A stretch of 63,235 nt of DNA, filler included, from Reticulomyxa filosa (lineage: Eukaryota; Protista; Foraminifera), in NCBI GenBank assembly GCA_000512085.1. It is 19 parts of 19 records of this genome, joined end to end, with 100 filler letters (N's around TTAATTAATTAA, not from the genome) between each part and the next. Parts side by side here need not be neighbours in the genome. Positions count along the whole stretch, not along the records: positions 28,338 to 36,368 come from ASPP01014187.1; 18 more parts are not named here. One strand, 5' to 3'. The translations under genes were made by a program, and so were the position numbers. Below the pieces are notes generated by a model. The model was not told the origin of the DNA and made no database searches. It saw only the letters and a program-made list of their open reading frames with translations. The stretch's first letter is position 1. Each line of letters starts with the position of its first letter. This document shows positions 1,709 through 36,368 of this stretch, piece by piece.

Positions 1709-4700
1709 ATTGACCAAGTCGCAACAATCCAAAAAGACATCGCATCCCCCCAAAACTCCAAAAACTAAACGGCCGGTGGTTCTAAAGGGAATCGGACTGA
1801 ACCGAAAGGCAACCATCTCGAAAGCGCGACGGTCCATGTTTTTCGACAATGATATGGTGGCCAATGTCCTCGGCCTTACCTCGGCCGACTCGTTCGATCC
1901 AAACAAGTCTGCTCCAAGTGTCCCACAAACACCGAGTATGGCACCGCGATCTCCAACTGCCACCGCAGATCATGTATGTTTTTGTTTTACTAATCTTCTA
2001 GTTTTGCATTGGATACGTATAATGAAACATACTTATATACATATATATACATATATATATATATATAATATATGTATATATTGTTTGGTATAGCTTCGAA
2101 TGGCAAGCACATTTAGTGAGGTATCTCTCGCGCATTGGATGCGTGACAAAGCATTGGACAACATGGAAGATAGCATGGAGGACCCTCCGTTTTGGGAAAA
2201 CGACCGGGCATTGTACGGAGCTTTGATGAGTGTGCAAATAATCGCCGAGTTCATGAACGAGTACAAGGCGTCGAGCGAGTGTCGTTCCAAGTTTATGAAG
2301 ATGGCAAAGTATTTCACGAGGTTTGTGAAGAATCACACGTTCCATAAAAACTGGTCCAATAAAAAGTTTCACGACAAAGCCAGTGCAAAGCTGCACCGTC
2401 ACAATTACAACCTGTTTCTCTACGAGAGCTATTTAGGAAGTCAAAAGTACTTTGCGCATTATCAAGCCAATTTGATTAAAAAGAGTTTATATATATATAT
2501 GTATATGTATATTTGATATTGTAAATTTTATATATATATACATATATACATATACATCTTAATATCGTTGTTGTTTGGGGAAAACTCTTTCTTAAACTTA
2601 CAGAAGAGCCAATGACGAAGATGTTGCCTCCTCCAGTTGCACAAGCTCAGTCTTGGAATTGGATCTCACTGGCCTCGCGATCGGCGAACATTGGCTTGAC
2701 GACATTGAAGGAGCATGACGACGAAATAGGGATCGTTGGAGAAGTCAACCGGAACAGATGGGACAATAGGAGACAACAACAACAACAACAACAACACTAG
2801 TACATTAGCAATTGAGAAAACGAAAACCATAACAAAGAGTGCATCCCTTCGAAGCAGCAAGGAAAAGGAATATTCCCAAGGGGACACTGTCGAGTCGAGA
2901 TATCACTCCTCGACAGACGGCAGCAAGTTGCCCGCATCCTCGCCCATTGAAAGGGACAAGGAAAAGTCGAGCAGCGGCCCGTCGCATCCTGGCAAGCTGT
3001 CGCTGCACGAAGATTCGGTCGACTCGCTGGAATGGAAGACGGACGACAGCATGCGCGAGCTGCATCGACAAATGAACGAGGAGTTCACTTTGGAAATCGA
3101 TCCTGTCCACAAAGTAGGCTTTTGCCATACCAAAACCTATCACATGAAGAACAAAACCAAACAATGGAAGAACCGCTATTTCGTTATTCGAGGGCATATG
3201 CTCTTCCGATATACTTTGAAAGATGACGACAAAGTCTTTGATTTGGTCAATTGTCATGCACAAGCTTTTGATTTGCAATTTGCCAAAGTTTCAAAAAAAT
3301 AAAATAAAATATAAAAATGTTATATGTGATTACAATACATATATGTATACGTATGTATGTATATAGATTGAGGTGCATGATAAAGTAATAAATTATAATG
3401 GCGTGAATTTGTACTCGTTCACATTGCATTTTATGTCGCCTTTCGAAAACGTGGACACGAAGGCGGCGCAACAGGAGCGGAAGCAGTACATGGTCGACCA
3501 CCCCCCGCTGTACTTGGCGTGTCTGAGTGCGGCCGAGAGAAAGGATTGGGTGTCCAAACTCGAGCTTTGCACGGATGGCCATTACGATGATGGCGACCTT
3601 AACAACGAGGACAAAGATAAAGATAAAGACAAAGACAAGAACAAAGAGGATAAGGATAAGAACAAGAACAAAGATAAGGATAAGGATAAGACGCAAACGA
3701 GTCGGAAAAAAGAAAGCGACGAGGATGCGACGACCAAAGGCAAAGGCAAAGACAAAGACAAAGACAAAGACAAAAACAATGGAAAAAGGAACAGTGAGGA
3801 CAATAAAAAGAAAGACCAGTCGGGGACTAGTACAATCGACATTGAAGACGATGACACTTGGCTAGTGAAGAGCGGAAGAGAAAGGGAAGGCAGTGAAGGC
3901 GGCAAGAAAAAGCAACCTTTTGCGTCCAACTATCGACTGGTCAACTCTTATCGACAACTGCTGTACGAAGGGGCCGCCCAGTTGGAAAATCCACAAATAT
4001 TTGGCAAGCTCATTGTTCCCGTTCAACTCTTCCTGGGCAACGACATCCTTGTCATCTGCGATCGCACCCAATTGCTTCACGACACCGCCGTCGCCGACGA
4101 ACGAAAGGAAGAGCCAAAGGCAGCAGCAGCACATAAAACTCAAGCGAGCAGAGAACCACTTCGTTAAGTTGAATTTTTTTTGTACGTACAATGACGTATA
4201 CATATACATATATACATATATATATATATTTATTTATTTATATATAATATTTTTTTTTGGGGGGAGGAGGGAAATAGATGCCAAGAAAAATAATCAATTG
4301 CCGACGTTTTTAGGAGGATTGTTTAACAAAGGCCAAGAATTGAAATCAGCCATGAAGCGTCGACATCGACATCGTCTTCGTTGATTGACAATGACAACGA
4401 CAATGAAGACGAAGGGGAGGGCGAAGGAGAGGCCGAGGAAGAAATGCTGCAGAGAGACTTTAACGAATTTTATAAGTTAAAGTTTATTGGCGCCATCCAC
4501 TTGATGGAAATCTTCACCATTCAGCTGGTCAATCCAACCAAAAACAACCCTACTGTTAATAACAAGACCACCAAAAAAACAAAGACAGACAGCAATACAA
4601 AGACCGACAACAATGCAACTACCAAAACTACTACTACTACTGCTGCAGCTGCTGCTGCAGCTGCTGCGGTTGCAAAAAGTAATACCAAAACGAATACTAC

Positions 4701-7622: not shown

Positions 7623-9644
7623 AGATCAAAGGGATTTGTCACAATTTTCTTTTTTTTTATTTTCTTCAAGGTCTCATTACATAAGCTAGCATTGCGATTT
7701 ACTTTTTTCATGGCAAAAAATCGCAAAAAGACATCATTTTTGTTGATAACTTTTTTAATTGGTGCGAAAGCGTCATGAGCAAATTTTTTTCACATTACAA
7801 CCATTTTCTTTTTGCTTCATCAATTCACCAAGTTTTTCCACGCCAAATATCGCACTCAGTAATTATAATTCAAAAATTTAACCAACTTACCATTATGCAC
7901 ACAAAGATTTCTTGCTTTCCGGTGAGCAAGATATACTCTTGTACGATCTCTCAAATACATTGCTCGGGCCACTAATCTCGTAGTCACGTGGAAGATTTAC
8001 TGCGACTTTGGAGCCTTCTCGTTGCTGCCGACTTTAGAGTCATATCTTAATCCAAATGTCGCCACACAACCCCTTTTTTATGATGATTCCATCAAAATTG
8101 ATTAGCTTCGTATGCACCCATCTCGCCAAGGTCAAGAGTCACTTTCGAAGATGAGTTTGATGTAGTCATTGATATGTGAAAAATGATGACTTTTTTTAAT
8201 TTGAACGTTTATATCATCATTATTTTCAATTCTAAAATTCAATGTTACTCTTTTCTGTATTTATTAAAATTTTACAACCTACTGTGGACTGATGCACAAA
8301 AACTCAAAAAAGCTCTTGCTTTTAAAAAAAAATCTATAAGTTTTTTGCATTTCGAATATTCTTCAAATTCAATTAAGAATGCAAAAAAAAACTTGCACTT
8401 ACAAAAAAACACAAGATTTGCAATTTTATAAAAGTAACTAACAAAAATAATAGAACACAAAATAAAACCAAATTTGCAAAAATAAAAAAATTTTAGTAAA
8501 AATGTTGTAAAAAAAAAAGAATGATTAAAACTTTAGAAAAAGATGAAATGCATTTTTAAATACTTGAAGATCGTAAAAAATTTTGAAAAAGTGTTTCTTC
8601 TTGTGAGTTTTTCCTTGTTGTTTTCCTGTAAAGTTTGTTATAGTTTTTCTAGTCTTTTTTAAGTACTATTTTTTTTAGAGAATAGAATGCTCATATTAGG
8701 GCTAAACTTGAGAAATCAGTTTGCCAGCATTATCCAAAAAGGACATAGCGCGCTCAAAAAACCAAAATAAAAAGAAACATATTGTCATAATCACTGAATT
8801 ATACTTATCAAAGCAAACACAATTTAGTGTATTAAGATAAACAATAATTAATTTAACAAAAATAAAAAAGAATTCAATATAGATAAGAACAAAAAGCATC
8901 ATCATTGTGATTACCACAGTCTGTGCTAAGATGTTATGTATTCATATATTCATCTTGATGTAGCCAGTATCTGCCCCCTTTTGCCTTCATAATGCATGAA
9001 ATTTTAAAAGAATTCGAAAAATAAAAAATTTAACCAAAAAAATATGATATAATATGTATAGAGTTTTTGTTTTTTTTAGTGATAAGCATCATTGTGCTCT
9101 TGGTTGCTGCTAGCCTCGGTTAGCGCTCACTATAAGTGTTTTTTATTTCTGGAATGTGTTTCTACTGTTCCAATTTTAATCATACATGTTGATATACAAT
9201 ATATGATAATCATGTCAGTTATTTGATATTATGGCATAGCTCCACCTTTATCTCAAAATTTCAATTGATTACTCGTTTGAATTTGGTCTTAGTGATTGTA
9301 TTGTACCTTTGATATTTTTTTAAATATTAACATAAATTTGTTTTTGATATAATTGTCAGAATGTCAAATATCAATTTATGTTATAATATCATTTATTTAT
9401 TTAATAACATGTTGTTAAATAAGTAACTATTTTATATAAAGACAACTAAAATATGATTTTAAACATAATCTAATCTTATTTGTCTTGATGCTTTTGATAT
9501 GTAACAATTTTTGATCATTTGGCTCCAACAGTTGCATTAATTTCTTGACATGTTCATTTAATATAAACATATATTCTTTATATTTAACCGACCAATATCA
9601 ATAAGTAACTACATTTTAGCTAAATTTTTAATATAATATGTCAT

Positions 9645-28337: not shown

Positions 28338-29575
28338 AAAAAAATTAAGTTTTTTTTTTTTTTTTTACGTAAACAGTTGGTAGCAGTGCTGATACACTCA
28401 TATAACAAACTCTTAGCAGGGGTGCTGCTAATGATTTGTGTCAAAGGCTCTTGAAGCTTTTTTGCGAGACGAGGCTCGGCGGGAATTAAGGACCCCAACA
28501 GTTTGACCAGTTTGATCAACATCCAGTTGTTGTTGCTATGATTAAGCAACTCAAACAATTGTGGCAGCAATGCCAAATAGTTGGAGGGTTTTTGCGCGCT
28601 AATTCACAGATGACGTTGACGGCCGCATTTTGGACTCCGGGGTCCTCGTCCTTCAATTTGTCCTTCAAACGGTCAAACGACAATCGCAATGCCCGAGGAA
28701 ATCTCTTAAATATTGGGTACAATACCAACACTGCTTTTTTGCGAATGTAAGGTTTTGAGCTATTCATCATCCCGTACACGTCTTCCAACAATGTCTCTGC
28801 CAAATAAGGAGTACATATATTTGACAAACAATTTAATGCACAGCCAGCTTCGTAAGGTAATCCCTCCAATAATCGCAAGTCATTGCCTGCTGTCGATTGT
28901 CCAAATGCCTTTTTTTTTTTATTACAAAAAAAAAAAAAAAAAAACCGTAATAACTTCAACCTCCCCCCCCCTTTTTTTTTAAAAAAAAAATTCATTCGCT
29001 AAAAATTTAAAAAAATCGAAACTTTTTTGAACTGATGCGTAGTCAACAGCACAACATCAGTTTGCTCTGTGAATGAAAGAGATGCTGCCAAATACCCCTG
29101 TTTTTATGTCAAAAAAAAAAATCAATAGTTTGAATTTTTCTTTTCTTTTTTTTTTTGGTTTGTTCATTTTTTTGCTTATTTGTGCTTTTTTTCGATTCAA
29201 AAAAAAACCTAACTATGCGCTTATGTGTAAAAGACGGCTGACTCATTACTTCAATTATGTTGAAATGAGCAAATGATATGTCGTATCCAATCATATAAAG
29301 CTGGTCATTTTTTTTATTGTTGTTATTGTTATTTTTTTTATTATTTTTTTTATTTTGTTTGAAGGAGAGATAGGGGAAAAAAAGTGATCAATGCTCGATA
29401 ACATAACGTAGCACAATTTTTGAATTGCATTTGCTTTAATATCATGGTCTTTGTCTTTCACCTCTTCTTTAATCTCAGTCAAACATTGATTGATAAAGGT
29501 TGATTCATCCTCTTTGTTGGATCTTAGGCCTTTCACCAGGTCCAACAAAGTTTTCCGAAACATTGCTGTCATCAT
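28338..29575 (-). CDS. AP3D1: AP-3 complex subunit delta, N-terminal part (multi-exon, 3' partial, one apparent 1-nt frameshift near 28585)
   Basis: 'MFRKTLLDLVKGLRSNKEDE', 'MIGYDISFAHFNIIEVMS', 'SSKPYIRKKAVL', 'EDPGVQNAAVNVICELARKNP' and 'NNWMLIKLVKLLGSLIPAEPRLAKKL'. Confidence 0.93.
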
Positions 29576-30251
29576 TCTTGCTGGTGTTTGTTGGTATTGA
29601 AACTTTCAAGCAAAGGAGCAAATAAATACTATAAGATACTCAAAACGGGAAAACGAGTACAAGATTCGCACACATTAAACCCCCAAATTTAAACTGATTA
29701 TTAAAAAAAACTCTTTACTGAAAGCGGTCAAAGCAAACACAAACATTAAAAAGCGCTTCACATTTTCCAATAAAATTGAAATCCAGACAAAAGAACCCAT
29801 TGATGTCTTTTAATGAAACAGCTATTTTAATCTGCTCTTATTACTTATTAGACTACTCTTATTTCGTGTTTACATAGCAAGATGAGGCAACACCAAGTAG
29901 GGCCAATTAGAGCAGTAGCAAATAGTTACTTGAATCGAACAAATCAAAAATTGTGTTTGCATTTGGATCGAATAGTTTAACAGTGTAAAGGTAAACTTCG
30001 TGAACGTTTTATTGTGTTTTTTTTTAGCAATTCTGGACTTATAAGGGACAGATCCATGAAAATCAGTCAATAAGGATTTTTGCATTCTATTGCAACAACA
30101 AGATAAATGGAACGATTGAACCATACATGCAAATAACCAACGAAACACCTTACAACTGACAAGTAGGCTGTTTTTTTTTGTGTTTGTCAGTATTATTATC
30201 CTCCCCACTTGACGACGCTGACGAACCAATATCATCATCTGGGCACTGTTA

Positions 30252-33200
30252 TTATGTTGTATTTTGCCAACAGTGGAAAAAAAAAGCAATATTTTTGTGT
30301 TTTGTTGTTATCGAAGTCAAGTTAACAGTCTGTGGAACAATTTCGCAAGTGCTTAAATCATAAAAATATCTCGTGAAATAAATCGGCTTTTTTTCCTTGG
30401 CTAAAGTATTTGTCGACATCTGAGACTCATGCAAAATTGTGACCTTGTGACAAACCAGATTTAAGGGATTGACATCAGCAGTAGGTTGGATACACTCGAA
30501 TCTTTCATTTGGCGAAAAATCTTTTGGTAGCTGATCTTCATCCAATCCATTCCTTATCAAATCGTTTCGATCCCAATACCACAGATTTCTCATAAACTTT
30601 TTTCCAGTTTTTTTATCTTCATACATTCCCACGATCTTGGCCAACTGAAAAAGATGTTGAATATGCAGGCAAACACGAAAAATATTAACACTGTAGCAGT
30701 AATGTATACATTAAAAAAATAAAAAACGAATAGAGCAATTGCATAACCCAGAGTTTGTTATCTAAGCCTTTAATTTGACACTTGTCGTACTGTCGATATT
30801 TGACTCCATTGATGAGAACTTTTTTATAATAAATTTTGCCTTTGCTCTCTCTTGTGGGCTTTCCACGCCAATAAATCGTATCTTCTTTGTTTGCATTGTT
30901 ATTTTTTGTGCTTTTTTTGAGTTCTTGGTTGTTTGTAGCTTGGGCAACGTTTTCTTTCTTTTTGACTGGGCCATTTTCATATTTGTTGATGTGATCGAAC
31001 AATCGATTGACCAACACTTCTTTAATTCCTGTTGTAGTAAGACCTCTTTTTTTCAATTTGGGTTTCAAATCCGCTACTCGTAATTTTTTTAAGCCGCTTT
31101 GGGTGTGTGGGGTTTCGGGGACTACATTTTGATTTTTTGCTTTGTTTTTAGAGATGGAGGATCCAGCATTAGTCTTCTGATCCTCTTCATCTGTCATTTT
31201 TTCCCCCCCCCCCAATTCATTTTCTGACAAAAATTAATGTTTCTTGGTTTGTTGCAATGTAACAACAAATAAACAGAAAGTATAGAGCATTATTCATCCC
31301 CATTTGTTCCTTGCACGCACATACACACACCTGCAGCATCCATCTCTGCAATTTTAGAAGAGAACTTTTTTTTGTTGTTTGGAGCAAAGCAAACCGACTT
31401 TGTTACTTTCACGCTATTGATACTTGGTTTCGAATTTTGTTTATGAATTGGTTGTAAAGGGCTGCTTGATTGCTGAGTGGCATTGTCATCGGAAGATTGC
31501 TCTGTTTCCATGTCGTTGCATCCTTCGAATAGAAAAGAAAATGTGTTGTGATCTATCATTCGTTTCTTTGAGGTTGGGGGTAGCCCTTCATTTGTTTCGC
31601 GTTTGCGCTTTTTTTTGTTATATTTTTGTCAACAAAAGAAAAGCAACGATTTTTTTTATTTTTTTTTTGCAAATACCAACACAAAATAAAACCTTGCGAG
31701 TTGAATGGTTTGATGATCCGTTGTTGGTAAAGATTTGTTCTCGGTTAGTACTCTGCGATTGATCATTCGAGTTCTTCGTATCAGGACTTTCTTCATCCAA
31801 TTTCTCTTCTTTTATTCGGATCTGCTGTTCACTTTTTTTAGCGATCTGTATTTCACGCCGTTTTCTCTTTCTAAAAATTTTCAAATCAAATGACGAGAAC
31901 GCACAAAACTAACTTGTGATGCTTTCGTGATCATTTCCTGGACATTTGCTAATTGCCTAGCTTCTTCACTTTTCAATTCGCCTTTGATCTGAGAAATGTC
32001 TGTTTGAATTGCGATCACCTCGTTGTATAACGTCTGCAGCTGATTGGACTCAATCATTTGTGCTTTTTTTTTGTGCTGTGCATTTTTTTTTCAAAGTACC
32101 TTTTCAATGTATTTGATCTCAAACATTTTAAAAAATACATTTGTCAAAATACCACCAATTGTGTCCTAAGCTGGTCAATCAACGAATTTTTAAGATCCAT
32201 TTCTTCGCGCAAGTCTGTTAATGTTTGCTCTAGAGATTGTTTCTCATTACGCTATACATAAAAAAAAAGATTGTGAACGTTACGACAATATTGCCAAAAA
32301 AAACAAAAAAAAGCGCACCCAAGTATCTGCGTCTTGTTGTGAGGCGTGTGTTTGGGCAGTCAAATTTTGACAAATTTTCTTTAGACTGTCATATTTTTGT
32401 CTAAATGTGTCGAGCTTCGACTGCAAGTCATCCCGTTGAGCAGTGAACTCATCAATGGATTGACGAAGGCCAGTCTTTTCTTCGGTCGCAGCTTTCAGCT
32501 TTTTTTCCAATGTGTCCACTTGTTTCTTTTTTTGTGTTTCTGTTCCATGTCATTTATGTAATTGTGTGCATTACAAAAAAAAAAATAAAGAGGCGAGATA
32601 AGAATACAAACAAACCCAAGTCAGAGACGCGCTGTTGTAACAAATCACATTTCTTTTGCAGCTTTTCTGTGTCGTCAAATTTTTCAGTTTTGGCTTGCAA
32701 GATTTGTTCATACAGCCGCTTTTCATTTGTTTCTTGTTGGTATTGAAGCTTTTGAACATTGAGTTGGTATTCCTTTTGCATGTCCATTTGGCCTGTTTTC
32801 AACCGTCTTACATCTTCTGACAACCGTCCATTTTCGTCCATGAGTTTTTCAATGTGTTGGTTACTCTTTTCAATTTCCACAGTCTTTTCACGCAATTTTC
32901 TGTGTATTTGCTGTGTCTCGCTCTCCATCTTTTTCACTTGGCTTTCCAACTGTCGCATCTGTTCGTACGTGGACAAGTCATTTCATCAAATATACTCCAA
33001 ACAACAAAAAGCCATTCAACTTGATCCGCTTTCAATTCGAGCAACTGTGTCCATTCCAATTGCAAGCCGACCATTTCCCCGAAATGGTCCATTATCAGTT
33101 TATTTCTTTCGCTCTATTTTCAATGGCAAGCTACCACAACATTAAAAAAAAAAAGGACAACACTACCACTAACAAAAACAACATTTTGCAAACTGTCAAT

Positions 33201-35271
33201 TCTTGGCGCAACTTGGACATATTCTCATGGTTTGACAATATCAATTTACGAATTGCAGCGGCATGTTTCTTTTTTTTTTGATCAAAAAAAAAAAAAAATC
33301 AAAACAAAGTAACAAAAAGACTAGTTAAAAAATTGGTAAATACTTTGGAGTTGCTAAACTTGGACATTCGATTCATTTTCGAGTTCCAAGTTTCTACAGT
33401 ACTTCCAAGTGTCGACAGCAATTGTGTACAGCCCACGTTTGTCGAAAAGCTGCCAGTCGATGTCTGTGTCCGGCATACATTGCACCTTTTCGTTACATCG
33501 TGTCAGAACGTCGCATTGTCCTGCGGAAGACATCAAGTTCAGTGTCTTCAACGTCGAAATCGCGTCTTTTCTATTCAAACCATAGAAACAGCAGCTGTCA
33601 CCACGAGACTTATGACACACGCAAAATCTCAAAGACTTATCAACTGAATGAAATTCGTGGTAGCAAGGATGGAAACAAAGCTGCGTCCAATTAAACAATC
33701 AGTTAGGACATTTGCTAGCACGCAACTATTAACGCTGGCTGTCGTGGTGGCCCTCATTTTGAGCAGACATTGGTTCAAACACGTCTGTGTCAAATCTGTA
33801 CAGCAATTGGCTACGCCCATTCCATCCCATTGCTTCTTCGCGCCGTCGCAGCTGCCATCCGCCAAGTCACAGAAACACACCTTCGCAAGCGTCGTCAACT
33901 CCTCGCTGTTCACTAATTCTATGATACACAAGTTGTGGCTGTCATTGCAACTCTGGTATTGTTTCGGTTTATTTGTGTCATCCAAGTGTTGGACCGACAA
34001 AAAACATCAATCATCAATTATTTATGTGTAATATGTAATTCTTTTTTTTTTTTTTTTTTTTTTTTTGATGACGTGTCATTTTATATATGTGTTTCTTCTT
34101 TTTTTAAAAAAATAAAAATAAAAACAATCTTAACAAAGTTGAGCAGCATTTGTCGTTTCTTTCTCTCAACAATAGCGTGAGACATCACATTTTCAAGCTC
34201 ATGGACATTGCTTACTCTCACTTTTGTCAACATCGTTGTGGTTCTGTGTCTTGCATGTGGTTTCAACTCCTTTTTTTTTCAAACCAATCAAAAAAAGAAA
34301 GAACACATATCACACATACACAACTTAGAGAAGTTGAAACCAATCAAAAAAAAAAAAAAAAAAAGAGATAATGTTTCTATATTGCATTTGAGGGGGAAAA
34401 AGAACATAACATGATTGCCAGTGGCCAACAGGTCACTCAAGTTTTCACAATAAATTTCAGCGCATGACATTTGGACGAAAAAGGACTCATTTTGTACATA
34501 GTCCATATCAAACAGCTGTTCCATTAATCTTTGAATCAAACCAAAGTCCCCTTTTTCTGTAATCACAGTATGCGTTTTGCAACTCCCTGAGACACCGTAT
34601 GCAAACACCACGCCGTTGTAACCTCGTCTCATTTGCTCGACTGTTGTCGACACAATGCACTCAAAGACCTTTTGCCATCAAACATCATTTTTTTTTTTTT
34701 GAAATATGTGCTTTCACTTTTGCAAACAAATGAAAGTGTAAAAAGAAAAAAAGGAAAAAAAAAAAAAAGAATAAAGGAGACCTCTGCGTTTGTGATATTC
34801 TTGTCAAATACTTTGGTGAATTGCAATTTTGTGGATTTTATCTTTTTTTTTTTTTTTTTTTTTTTGAGAGTGATGTCTGTTTGCGTTGAGGAAAAAAGTT
34901 ATCGTGGCTGTCATTTGATAAAAATAAAATAAATTAAAAAAACACGGCACTCCAGCGCAGTTATCGATTTCAACAGAGCGTTGATCGTCAGAAATCATGC
35001 AGTCAGCTGCTTGTTCTGTGCCATCAGCACGTCCGATGCGCAAGTAAATTTCTACATTTCTCTGTGGTGGCGTTTGGGTATTTGGTAAAGGTGCTGTACT
35101 AGCATTATCTGAGGAAGGAGAAAGACATGGCGAAAATGGAGGCCGCAATGAAGTAGAGGGTGACACGGCAACAGTGGGCTCCATCGATTCTTTGCCACGT
35201 GATCCAACTTTTTCACAAATACCCCTTGGAATGTCGGTCGCATTATTACTTCTGTGTTCAAAAGGATACAT
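30252..35271 (-). CDS. Degenerate kinesin motor + coiled coil + SAP + BAH domain protein (about 14 exons)
   Basis: Kinesin motifs 'NVEIYLRI', 'FTKVFD', 'GYNGVVFAYGVSGSCKTHT', 'EIYCENLSDLL', 'NF|SCNDSH', 'VCFCDLADGS' and 'STLKTLNL'. Coiled-coil exons at about 33270-31910. SAP 'LKKLRVADLKPKLKKRGLTTTGIKEVLVNRL'. BAH 'YYKKVLINGVKY..LAKIVGMYED..LWYW..NERF..DVNPLNLVCHKVTIL..YFTRYFYD'. The exons join in frame through GT-AG sites by manual splicing. Confidence 0.75.
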
Positions 35272-35530
35272 AAATTGTCAAAGAGTGTTTGTAATTATCG
35301 TGGAAAATAGCTTGCGTTATATTTTGAGAAAACTGAGACTACAAAGTAAATCTTGATTAAATATGAAAAGTTAATATTTACTTAGACAGACTTATCTTCT
35401 CAGAAGTGTGCAAAAAAAATACTAATTAGGAGAACTGAAGAGAGGAAACAATTCGTTAAAAGTTATTTGTAAATTTTTTCTGTGTAAAAACCTCCCTTCT
35501 TAAAAAAAAAACTAAAATAAAAAAAATATA

Positions 35531-35981
35531 ATGTCGTTCCAAAAAGCTTTAGAAGAAGTAAAGCAAGGCCGTTTTATGGAGCCCTTATTATGTCTGGATC
35601 TGTGTCGACAAATCCGGAAGCAATATTTTTTCCAGGACTCAAACATATTGACATTGAAAACGCCAATAACATTGGTAGGGGACATTCATGGCCAATTGAA
35701 TGATTTATTGGAATTATTTGAAATTGGCGGTTATCCGCCACAGACGAATTATCTATTTTTAGGTGATTACGTGGACCGCGGTAAATTTAGCGTTGAGACA
35801 ATTCAATTGATTTTGTTACTAAAAATATTGTACCCAAAATCAGTTCAAATGATTCGAGGTAATCACGAGTCCGAAACAGTGAATCGAGTGTATGGTTTTT
35901 ACGACGAGATCAAAGTCAAATATGCACCCGCTTTCAGTACACAAATATTTAAAGGTTTGTTTTTATTTTTTATTTCAACAA

Positions 35982-36035
<54 letters not shown>

Positions 36036-36368
36036 TGTTCCTCTCCTACAGCCTTCAATGAATTGTTTGACTGCATGCCATTGGTGCATGTATTGACACG
36101 AACATATTTTGTATCCACGGTGGATTGTCTCCATTGTTGATGAGTTTGGAGCAATTTCAAACCATCAATCGCTTTCAAGAAATTAGCTTGAGCGGAGCTT
36201 TATCGGTTAATTTTTTTTTTTTTTTTTTTTTAATGTTCCCCCTTTTTTTCTTTTTTATTATTAAAAAAAAAAAAAAAAAAAGGATCTCATGTGGAGTGAT
36301 CCAGATGAAAAATGCAAAGGATTCATGATTTCACCTCGAGGATGTGGACATCTATTTGGTGAAGATGT
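35531..36368 (+). CDS. PPP-family Ser/Thr phosphatase catalytic subunit, PP2A/PP4/PP6-like (3' partial)
   Basis: GDIHGQ, GDYVDRG, RGNHE, 'CIHGGLSP', 'DLMWSDP' and '[10 protein letters not shown]' motifs. Introns present. One apparent 1-nt frameshift near 36083. Confidence 0.92.
35984..36033. repeat. (TTA)n microsatellite within an intron
   Basis: Pure trinucleotide run inside the first phosphatase intron. Confidence 0.9.

Follow-up and report, generated by a model that had tools for sequence, protein, structure and literature searches.

Chromokinesins such as those of the kinesin-10 (Kid/KIF22/Nod) and kinesin-4 (KIF4/Xklp1) families are nuclear proteins with an N-terminal motor, a coiled-coil stalk and a C-terminal tail that binds chromatin or DNA. 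Most of what is known about motors that connect chromosomes with microtubules comes from animals, fungi and plants; their grip on DNA is non-specific. In yeast, Vik1 and Cik1 serve as non-catalytic partners of the kinesin-14 Kar3; in each, a coiled coil pairs the active motor with a globular, kinesin-like domain whose nucleotide site does not work. Methyl-lysine marks are read by BAH domains, including those of ZMET2/CMT3 (H3K9me2), DNMT1 (BAH1, H4K20me3), ORC1 (H4K20me2), BAHCC1 (H3K27me3) and TNRC18 (H3K9me3), while SAP is a 35-residue helix-extended loop-helix motif that binds DNA and is found in SAF-A/B, PIAS, Ku70 and Acinus. Here we describe a gene from Reticulomyxa filosa, a naked freshwater foraminifer (Rhizaria) that grows as a giant multinucleate amoeba with extreme microtubule-based transport and an expanded set of motors. 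The gene, encoding a kinesin-like region, a stalk, a SAP domain and a BAH domain, occupies positions 30150..35271 on the minus strand of the window, a stretch of 63,235 nucleotides in which 19 parts of the R. filosa assembly GCA_000512085.1 are joined end to end. It falls in the piece 28338-36368 (8,031 bases), which derives from ASPP01014187.1 and is referred to, in reverse orientation, as locus L001. Features of the gene given below are all on the minus strand.

The locus resembles the chromokinesins in its motor-stalk-tail layout and in the implied logic of linking chromosomes to spindle microtubules, but differs from them at both ends. Chromokinesin tails are of the helix-hairpin-helix, HMGN-like or Cys-rich/zipper type, whereas the tail at L001 is made up of SAP and BAH, and chromokinesin motors are active ATPases (Nod being non-motile), whereas the motor motifs of L001 are broken. 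Vik1 and Cik1 show that a subunit with a dead motor can still contribute microtubule contact; their motor-homology domains are however C-terminal, without recognisable kinesin motifs, and are not accompanied by chromatin-binding domains. The BAH domain matches the methyl-lysine readers in sequence profile, in fold (on a paralogue model) and in its aromatic positions (W...W-x-W), yet none of those readers is joined to a motor protein or preceded by SAP. The SAP domains of SAF-A/B, PIAS, Ku70 and Acinus, in turn, occur in other protein contexts, and outside L001 the SAP-linker-BAH arrangement was seen only in the R. filosa paralogues and in a handful of environmental sequences. What appears to be new is a chromatin-reading tail not described before on a protein laid out like a chromokinesin, along with a dead-motor member. 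With a probability of about 0.7, we read the locus as one gene of approximately 1,200 residues with a ruined motor and an intact SAP domain and BAH cage, whose product would act as a chromatin-to-microtubule tether or as one half of a heterodimer.

The open segments on this strand, as seen in the list of open reading frames and the stop-to-stop translation, are set apart by short AT-rich stretches. The initial annotation had proposed that such fragments link in frame through GT-AG introns within one contig, and this is borne out by a model of 17 exons and 16 GT-AG introns with a frame of 3,603 nt, i.e. 1,200 codons plus a stop codon at 30152-30150, without internal stops. Exon ends were set from minus-strand coordinates, followed by a scripted check of frame, phase and splice dinucleotides. 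In this model the motor is encoded by exons 1-6 (35271-34951, 34841-34782, 34668-34411, 34269-34135, 33952-33645 and 33570-33360), followed by exons 7-12 (33268-33194, 33113-33021, 32958-32616, 32518-32319, 32251-32156 and 32075-31914) and exons 13-17 (31866-31693, 31607-31331, 31223-30748, 30644-30327 and 30245-30150). The introns measure 47-182 nt, with a GC content of 0.20-0.41 as compared to 0.32-0.48 for the exons. Profile scans were run per exon or on database paralogues, and the joined sequence was used for the local check of frame, stops and junctions. Three further loci of R. filosa were compared, L002 (ASPP01008503.1), L003 (ASPP01009746.1) and L004 (ASPP01019678.1), along with the annotated paralogue proteins P0002 (L003), P0006 (721 aa) and P0098 (848 aa, L004).

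Three junctions had been flagged in the initial annotation, i.e. 31913|31866 (with the second of adjacent AGs), 31330|31224 and 30747|30645, and all three are GT-AG and in frame. The last of these lies inside the BAH domain and is independently validated, since L003 has no intron at that place and P0002 reads straight across the homologous residues. Two introns were added to the earlier scheme. The first is intron 5 (33644-33571; 74 nt, phase 2), inside the motor, which on comparison of the four loci is the explanation of an apparent motor frameshift. Its donor (CA|GTT), directly after the conserved F-x-Q closing the beta8 region, is the same in L001, L002, L003 and L004. Likewise, a phase-2 acceptor precedes a short conserved segment in all four loci (KDAISTLKTL in L001; ENAVAPLNSL, ENFVSSLGAL and EDFMPTLDSL in the paralogues) that resembles the ETLSTLRFA of kinesin helix alpha6. 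The intron was placed at 33644-33571 because donor, acceptor and alpha6-like segment are all conserved across the loci. A frameshift or assembly error near 33650-33690 was ruled out, as this intron restores the frame, and a 116-nt intron at 33636-33521 was rejected since it would remove the alpha6-like segment kept in the four copies. The stretch DKSLRFC, considered as an alpha6 motif, is intronic and was dismissed accordingly. The second addition is the last intron (30326-30246; 81 nt, GT-AG, in frame), leading to exon 17 (30245-30150), which encodes a Ser-rich, acidic then basic tail ending in the stop. If the intron is not spliced, the frame closes at 30252-30254. Sequence similarity ends right after Q-T/S, followed by GT, in all four paralogues, and the terminal intron and exon 17 are probably real, with weaker support than the other exons.

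Intron gain or loss has also occurred within the family. The BAH intron is missing from L003 (3253|3254), while L002 (about 2997-3092) and L004 (about 9436-9516) each carry an extra intron within the region that forms the single exon 6 in L001. L004 possibly contains a 27-nt mini-exon in the same region.

The public annotation of ASPP01014187.1 divides the interval differently, into four gene models of 292, 292, 234 and 170 residues. This is the first argument for the alternative of separate genes lying head to tail, in which one or two genes for coiled-coil proteins would stand between that of a short kinesin and that of an independent SAP-BAH protein. Stand-alone-looking environmental SAP-BAH proteins of 282 to 361 residues (P0022, P0097) point in the same direction, as does the first AG at 31872, which would terminate a kinesin-stalk protein. 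However, the ends of the kinesin and SAP models are stops inside introns of the 17-exon model, and those of the other two are consistent with this. The model boundaries moreover cut the motor, leaving the alpha6-like exon and the post-motor block outside the "kinesin" gene, and the gaps of 47-182 nt look like introns and leave no intergenic space. The 170-residue model (P0001) is 100% identical to the SAP exon, and no public model covers the last BAH exon. The 234-residue model spans 837 nt, which by arithmetic alone equals 705 nt of coding sequence plus 47 and 85 nt; it is compatible with the same 47-nt and 85-nt introns between exons 12, 13 and 14, an agreement between predictors only.

Collinearity with the paralogues speaks against separate genes as well. 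In L002, exons 1-16 of L001 are all matched in the same order and strand, with the exception of exon 13, exon 7 being recovered only via P0006. L003 is collinear from exon 5 onwards, its motor being cut by the contig start, and in L004 a kinesin gene lies directly upstream of P0098. Both annotated proteins start near the conserved post-motor block that closes L001 exon 6, P0006 at its end and P0098 just upstream of it, and both continue through stalk and nuclear localization signal (NLS) to the BAH domain, so that the annotators' own models of two paralogues join stalk and tail. Because the kinesin/BAH boundary at these loci falls within conserved coding sequence, the split appears to be an annotation artefact. 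The order of motor, stalk, NLS, SAP and BAH, proposed earlier for this locus as one gene, is shared by four loci whose sequences are by now only 30-65% identical. Since the order survives such divergence, and no intergenic space is left, L001 is likely to be a single gene, and a row of separate genes is improbable.

The fragmentation extends to the whole family. The public models number four each at L001 and L003 and two each at L002 and L004, and all of them end by intron read-through. The architecture is thus invisible in protein databases, and surveys of domain architecture based on public R. filosa proteins will miss multi-domain genes.

A related alternative, compatible with a single gene, is that alternative 3' splice sites or the skipping of an exon yield two products from the locus, one of 758 residues that lacks the tail and one of 1,200 residues (1,142 without exon 13) that carries it. 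The AGs at the end of intron 12 (31913-31867; 47 nt, the shortest intron) lie within 6 nt at 31872-31865. Only the second keeps the frame; use of the AG 4 nt upstream (31872-31871) leads to a stop after five codons, and the resulting 758-residue product is devoid of SAP and BAH. Exon 13 is 174 nt long and flanked by phase-0 introns, so that it could be skipped in frame, and no counterpart of it was detectable in the paralogues by exon comparison. Still, these are readings of the sequence, and the premature stop could be mere noise that is cleared by mRNA surveillance. We regard a pair of products as possible, at something like one chance in four.

The kinesin-like motor region spans 33360..35271 (exons 1-6) and opens with a Ser/Pro-rich N-terminal extension of approximately 70 residues. 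Its membership of the kinesin superfamily follows from exon 3 (34668-34411), which contains the P-loop and matches Pfam Kinesin (PF00225) with 72.8 bits and E 3.2e-20, above the cut-off of 29.3 bits. Compared with solved kinesins in the Protein Data Bank (PDB), this exon gave an E-value of 3.7e-12, with kinesin-8, kinesin-1 and CENP-E as best matches. Exon 5 aligned collinearly but weakly with the kinesin-13 structure 1ry6 (E 0.4), and the motor exons are all collinear with L002. The best PDB match for the corresponding exon of L004 is a kinesin-13. Judged from these PDB matches, the motor of the family appears to be close to no characterised kinesin family. A family-specific block common to all copies (W..FDK..LY.IAV..WK.C.N.E.EN) follows the alpha6-like segment, and is itself followed by neck and stalk.

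None of the four nucleotide-binding motifs of an active motor (N1 GxxxxGK[ST], N2 SSRSH, N3 DxxGxE and N4 RxRP) is retained in L001. The N4 motif (35029..35040) reads RIGR instead of the expected RxRP, which is present as RIRP in L002 and L004. In the N1 P-loop (34573..34596) the sequence is GVSGSCKT, with Cys in place of the Gly before Lys, as compared to GVSKSGKT in L002 and GVSRSGKT in L004; both N4 and N1 of L003 are lost to the contig start. Switch I (N2, 33935..33952) is SCNDSH rather than NSSRSH, which is found in L003 and L004, L002 having SDSSH. Switch II (N3, 33851..33868) is DLADGS rather than DLAGSE, the paralogues reading DLAGAN (L002), DLAGAE (L003) and DLAGAD (L004). Because all four motifs are lost, the L001 motor should not hydrolyse ATP. 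On its motif content, the label of pseudokinesin given in the initial annotation is justified for the L001 copy only, as the paralogues keep most of the ATPase motifs.

The divergence is concentrated in the exon that encodes switch I and switch II together with alpha4 and alpha5. In the three paralogues the E-values of this exon against Pfam Kinesin range from 3e-14 to 5e-25; in L001 no Kinesin match was obtained at E 0.1 or better. Its identity to the paralogues is 32-40% for L001, as against 48-53% among the paralogues. The P-loop exon (59-62% identity), the post-motor block, the stalk and the BAH domain of L001, on the other hand, are on par or better in comparison with the paralogues. The arginine of loop L12 is replaced by N in L001 and by Q in L004, being kept in L002 and L003, and helix alpha4 is only partly conserved.

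Such a pattern could be expected if L001 were a decaying, unexpressed or functionless duplicate, with only the paralogues being real active genes. The loss of all four motifs, the faster divergence of the switch I/switch II exon and the weak junction between exons 12 and 13, with an AG that gives a premature stop, would all be accommodated. It is difficult to reconcile with 1,200 codons free of stops and GT-AG dinucleotides at 16 of 16 introns, with a SAP domain above the Pfam cut-off, and with a BAH domain that is 67% identical to that of L004 and has kept its three cage tryptophans. The confinement of the divergence to one exon is also more easily understood as a change of function than as neutral decay. 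A functionless copy is for these reasons considered unlikely.

Two further features of the motor were observed. Exon 5 of L001 (33952-33645) is cysteine-rich, with 11 Cys in 102 full codons, and several of these residues are shared with the paralogues, e.g. the C-x-C before DLA. The motor of L003, otherwise the most canonical (NSSRSH, DLAGAE), contains a low-complexity Ser/Thr/Ala insert of approximately 55 residues (L003 about 250-440) between helix alpha4 and loop L12, i.e. on the microtubule-binding face.

The motor is followed by a coiled-coil stalk (31693..33268, exons 7-13), the exons of which matched only coiled-coil families in Pfam, all below cut-offs. They align in the same order with the stalk regions of P0006 and P0098, sharing 35-51% identity; the stalk of the family is approximately 450 residues long. 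Both basic segments described earlier are present, namely RKRR (31866-31855) and, at the start of exon 14, the bipartite NLS-like motif RKRE-x9-KKR (31607-31560). A bipartite basic motif is found at the equivalent place in all four paralogues, and we infer that it would mediate nuclear import.

The SAP domain, placed near 30990-31095 by the initial annotation, was recovered by Pfam (PF02037) at 31092-31000 with 37.9 bits and E 1.3e-9, covering profile positions 2-32 of 37 and exceeding the cut-off of 23.9 bits. It is above the cut-off also in L003, and degenerate in L002 and L004. The BAH domain, expected near 30330-30870, was located at 30327..30879, where intron 15 (30747-30645) splits it into 30879-30748 and 30644-30327. 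Among its relatives, P0097 reaches 45.9 bits against the Pfam BAH profile (PF01426), above the cut-off of 30.8 bits, and P0006 reaches 28.5 bits. A profile built from the family alignment matched solved BAH domains in the PDB, first maize ZMET2 (E 3.6e-9) and DNMT1 BAH1 (1.2e-7), then rice ASI1 and BAHCC1. The tail exons matched only SAP and BAH in Pfam, and no helix-hairpin-helix or Cys-rich DNA-binding tail was found among them.

The fold was further assessed from an AlphaFold model of residues 668-838 of the paralogue P0098, which is 60-67% identical to L001 in this region and was chosen because an intron splits the BAH domain of L001, for which no single reference exists. The mean predicted local distance difference test score (pLDDT) is 56, with values of 73-87 over most of residues 10-80. 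With this model as query, the top 50 Foldseek matches were all BAH domains, the best with E 6.7e-6 and a root-mean-square deviation of approximately 2 Å over approximately 75 residues. The matches include DNMT1 BAH1/H4K20me3, BAHCC1/H3K27me3, ZMET2/H3K9me2, ORC1/H4K20me2 and TNRC18/H3K9me3, and the paralogue is accordingly predicted to adopt the BAH beta-barrel. In the profile alignment to ZMET2, the Y...W-x-F columns of the maize protein correspond to W...W-x-W in the family. The ZMET2 residues Y203, W224 and F226, which we take to be those of the H3K9me2 cage, are thereby represented in L001 by three tryptophans, at 30750-30748, 30581-30579 and 30575-30573. The W/W/W set is common to L001, L003, L004 and the distant marine P0097, while in L002 two of the three residues are replaced by R and C. 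From the sequence it can reasonably be inferred that the BAH domain of L001 would serve as a methyl-lysine reader.

Taken together, the protein might operate as follows. It would dimerise through the stalk and be carried into the nucleus by its NLS, where SAP would grip DNA and BAH would recognise a methylated lysine of a histone tail, and the motor-like head would couple the chromatin to microtubules as a static, non-motile clamp. Alternatively, the protein could pair with an ATPase-competent paralogue and contribute the inactive subunit, in the manner of Vik1 and Cik1 in their complexes with Kar3. The lone tether put forward in the initial annotation is only one option, the partner of an active paralogue being another, because other copies of the family keep near-canonical ATPase motifs. 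We tentatively suggest, as an idea with somewhat more than one chance in three, that Foraminifera, or Reticulomyxa at least, could have evolved their own class of chromatin-reading kinesins, with SAP and a methyl-lysine-reading BAH in place of the DNA-binding tails of animal chromokinesins, in which the L001 copy would act as a clamp or a Vik1-like regulatory partner of the active paralogues in closed mitosis or in the microtubule-based transport of nuclei through the syncytium.

Several points weigh against a tether encoded by a single gene. Every splice junction in L001 is a prediction from sequence, and the public annotation has four models in the interval. The link between stalk and tail hangs on the 47-nt intron 12, the first AG of which would end the protein before SAP and BAH. 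The last large exon on its own scored only 17.3 bits (E 4.4e-3) against Pfam BAH, below the cut-off, being only part of an intron-split domain, and the structural model of this domain comes from a paralogue and is unreliable in its C-terminal half. Finally, it is uncertain whether the motor of L001 would bind microtubules, as two of its microtubule-binding elements, the L12 arginine and helix alpha4, are also eroded.

The distribution of the tail was examined by scanning the SAP-BAH exon with HMMER against 1.84 billion representative proteins. The linked module was found in R. filosa P0001, P0002 and P0006 and in the short environmental sequences P0007, P0022/P0097 and P0091; P0098 surfaced only in a later search with the BAH region. 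In P0097, from the marine metatranscriptome ERR1712130 (P0022/P0097), BAH was matched with E 6e-12 and SAP with E 3e-6. The environmental SAP-linker-BAH proteins may be stand-alone proteins or 3' fragments of kinesin fusions, either being possible. P0007 comes from a freshwater/IMG contig of 933 nt and shares 70% identity with the first BAH strands of L001. Searches with the BAH regions of P0006 and P0098 and with the neck and stalk of P0098 found no relatives of 400-1,480 residues outside R. filosa, and a metagenome scan with the BAH alignment gave no match. No protein combining Kinesin and BAH was present in the collections searched, in part since the R. filosa models are fragmented. Likewise, no full-text article was found pairing kinesin with BAH and SAP, a kinesin motor domain with a BAH domain, or chromokinesin with bromo-adjacent homology, in agreement with the earlier statement that no described kinesin is known to have a SAP+BAH tail. 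Within R. filosa, at least four paralogues share the layout of motor, stalk, bipartite NLS, SAP and BAH.

If this reading is correct, a kinesin whose BAH domain retains its methyl-lysine cage would link the microtubule cytoskeleton directly to a specific chromatin state. The four copies would also constitute a natural series running from a near-canonical to a dead motor and from an intact to a degenerate SAP/BAH tail, of use for studying the origins of pseudo-motors.

The gene is flanked by two others within the same piece. At 28338-29575 (minus strand; Pfam Adaptin_N E 2e-24 on 28995-28519) lies the 5' portion of an adaptin gene, truncated where the piece ends; it begins approximately 575 nt downstream of the probable stop of the L001 gene; its N-terminus resembles, by eye, an AP-3 delta-type subunit. 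On the other side, a PPP-type Ser/Thr phosphatase gene (35531-36368, plus strand; Metallophos E 2e-18) diverges from the kinesin gene, lying only 260 nt from its start codon. A Metallophos gene is found divergently upstream of the L004 kinesin too (L004 6208-7015). A segmental duplication shared with L004 was however ruled out as an account of this arrangement, because tblastn of the L001-side phosphatase revealed no similarity to that of L004, and the like gene order at the two loci is not evidence of such an event. The L001-side phosphatase gene contains, at about 35990-36040, an apparently intronic trinucleotide run of approximately 17 repeats, the frames of which read poly-Y, poly-L and poly-I.

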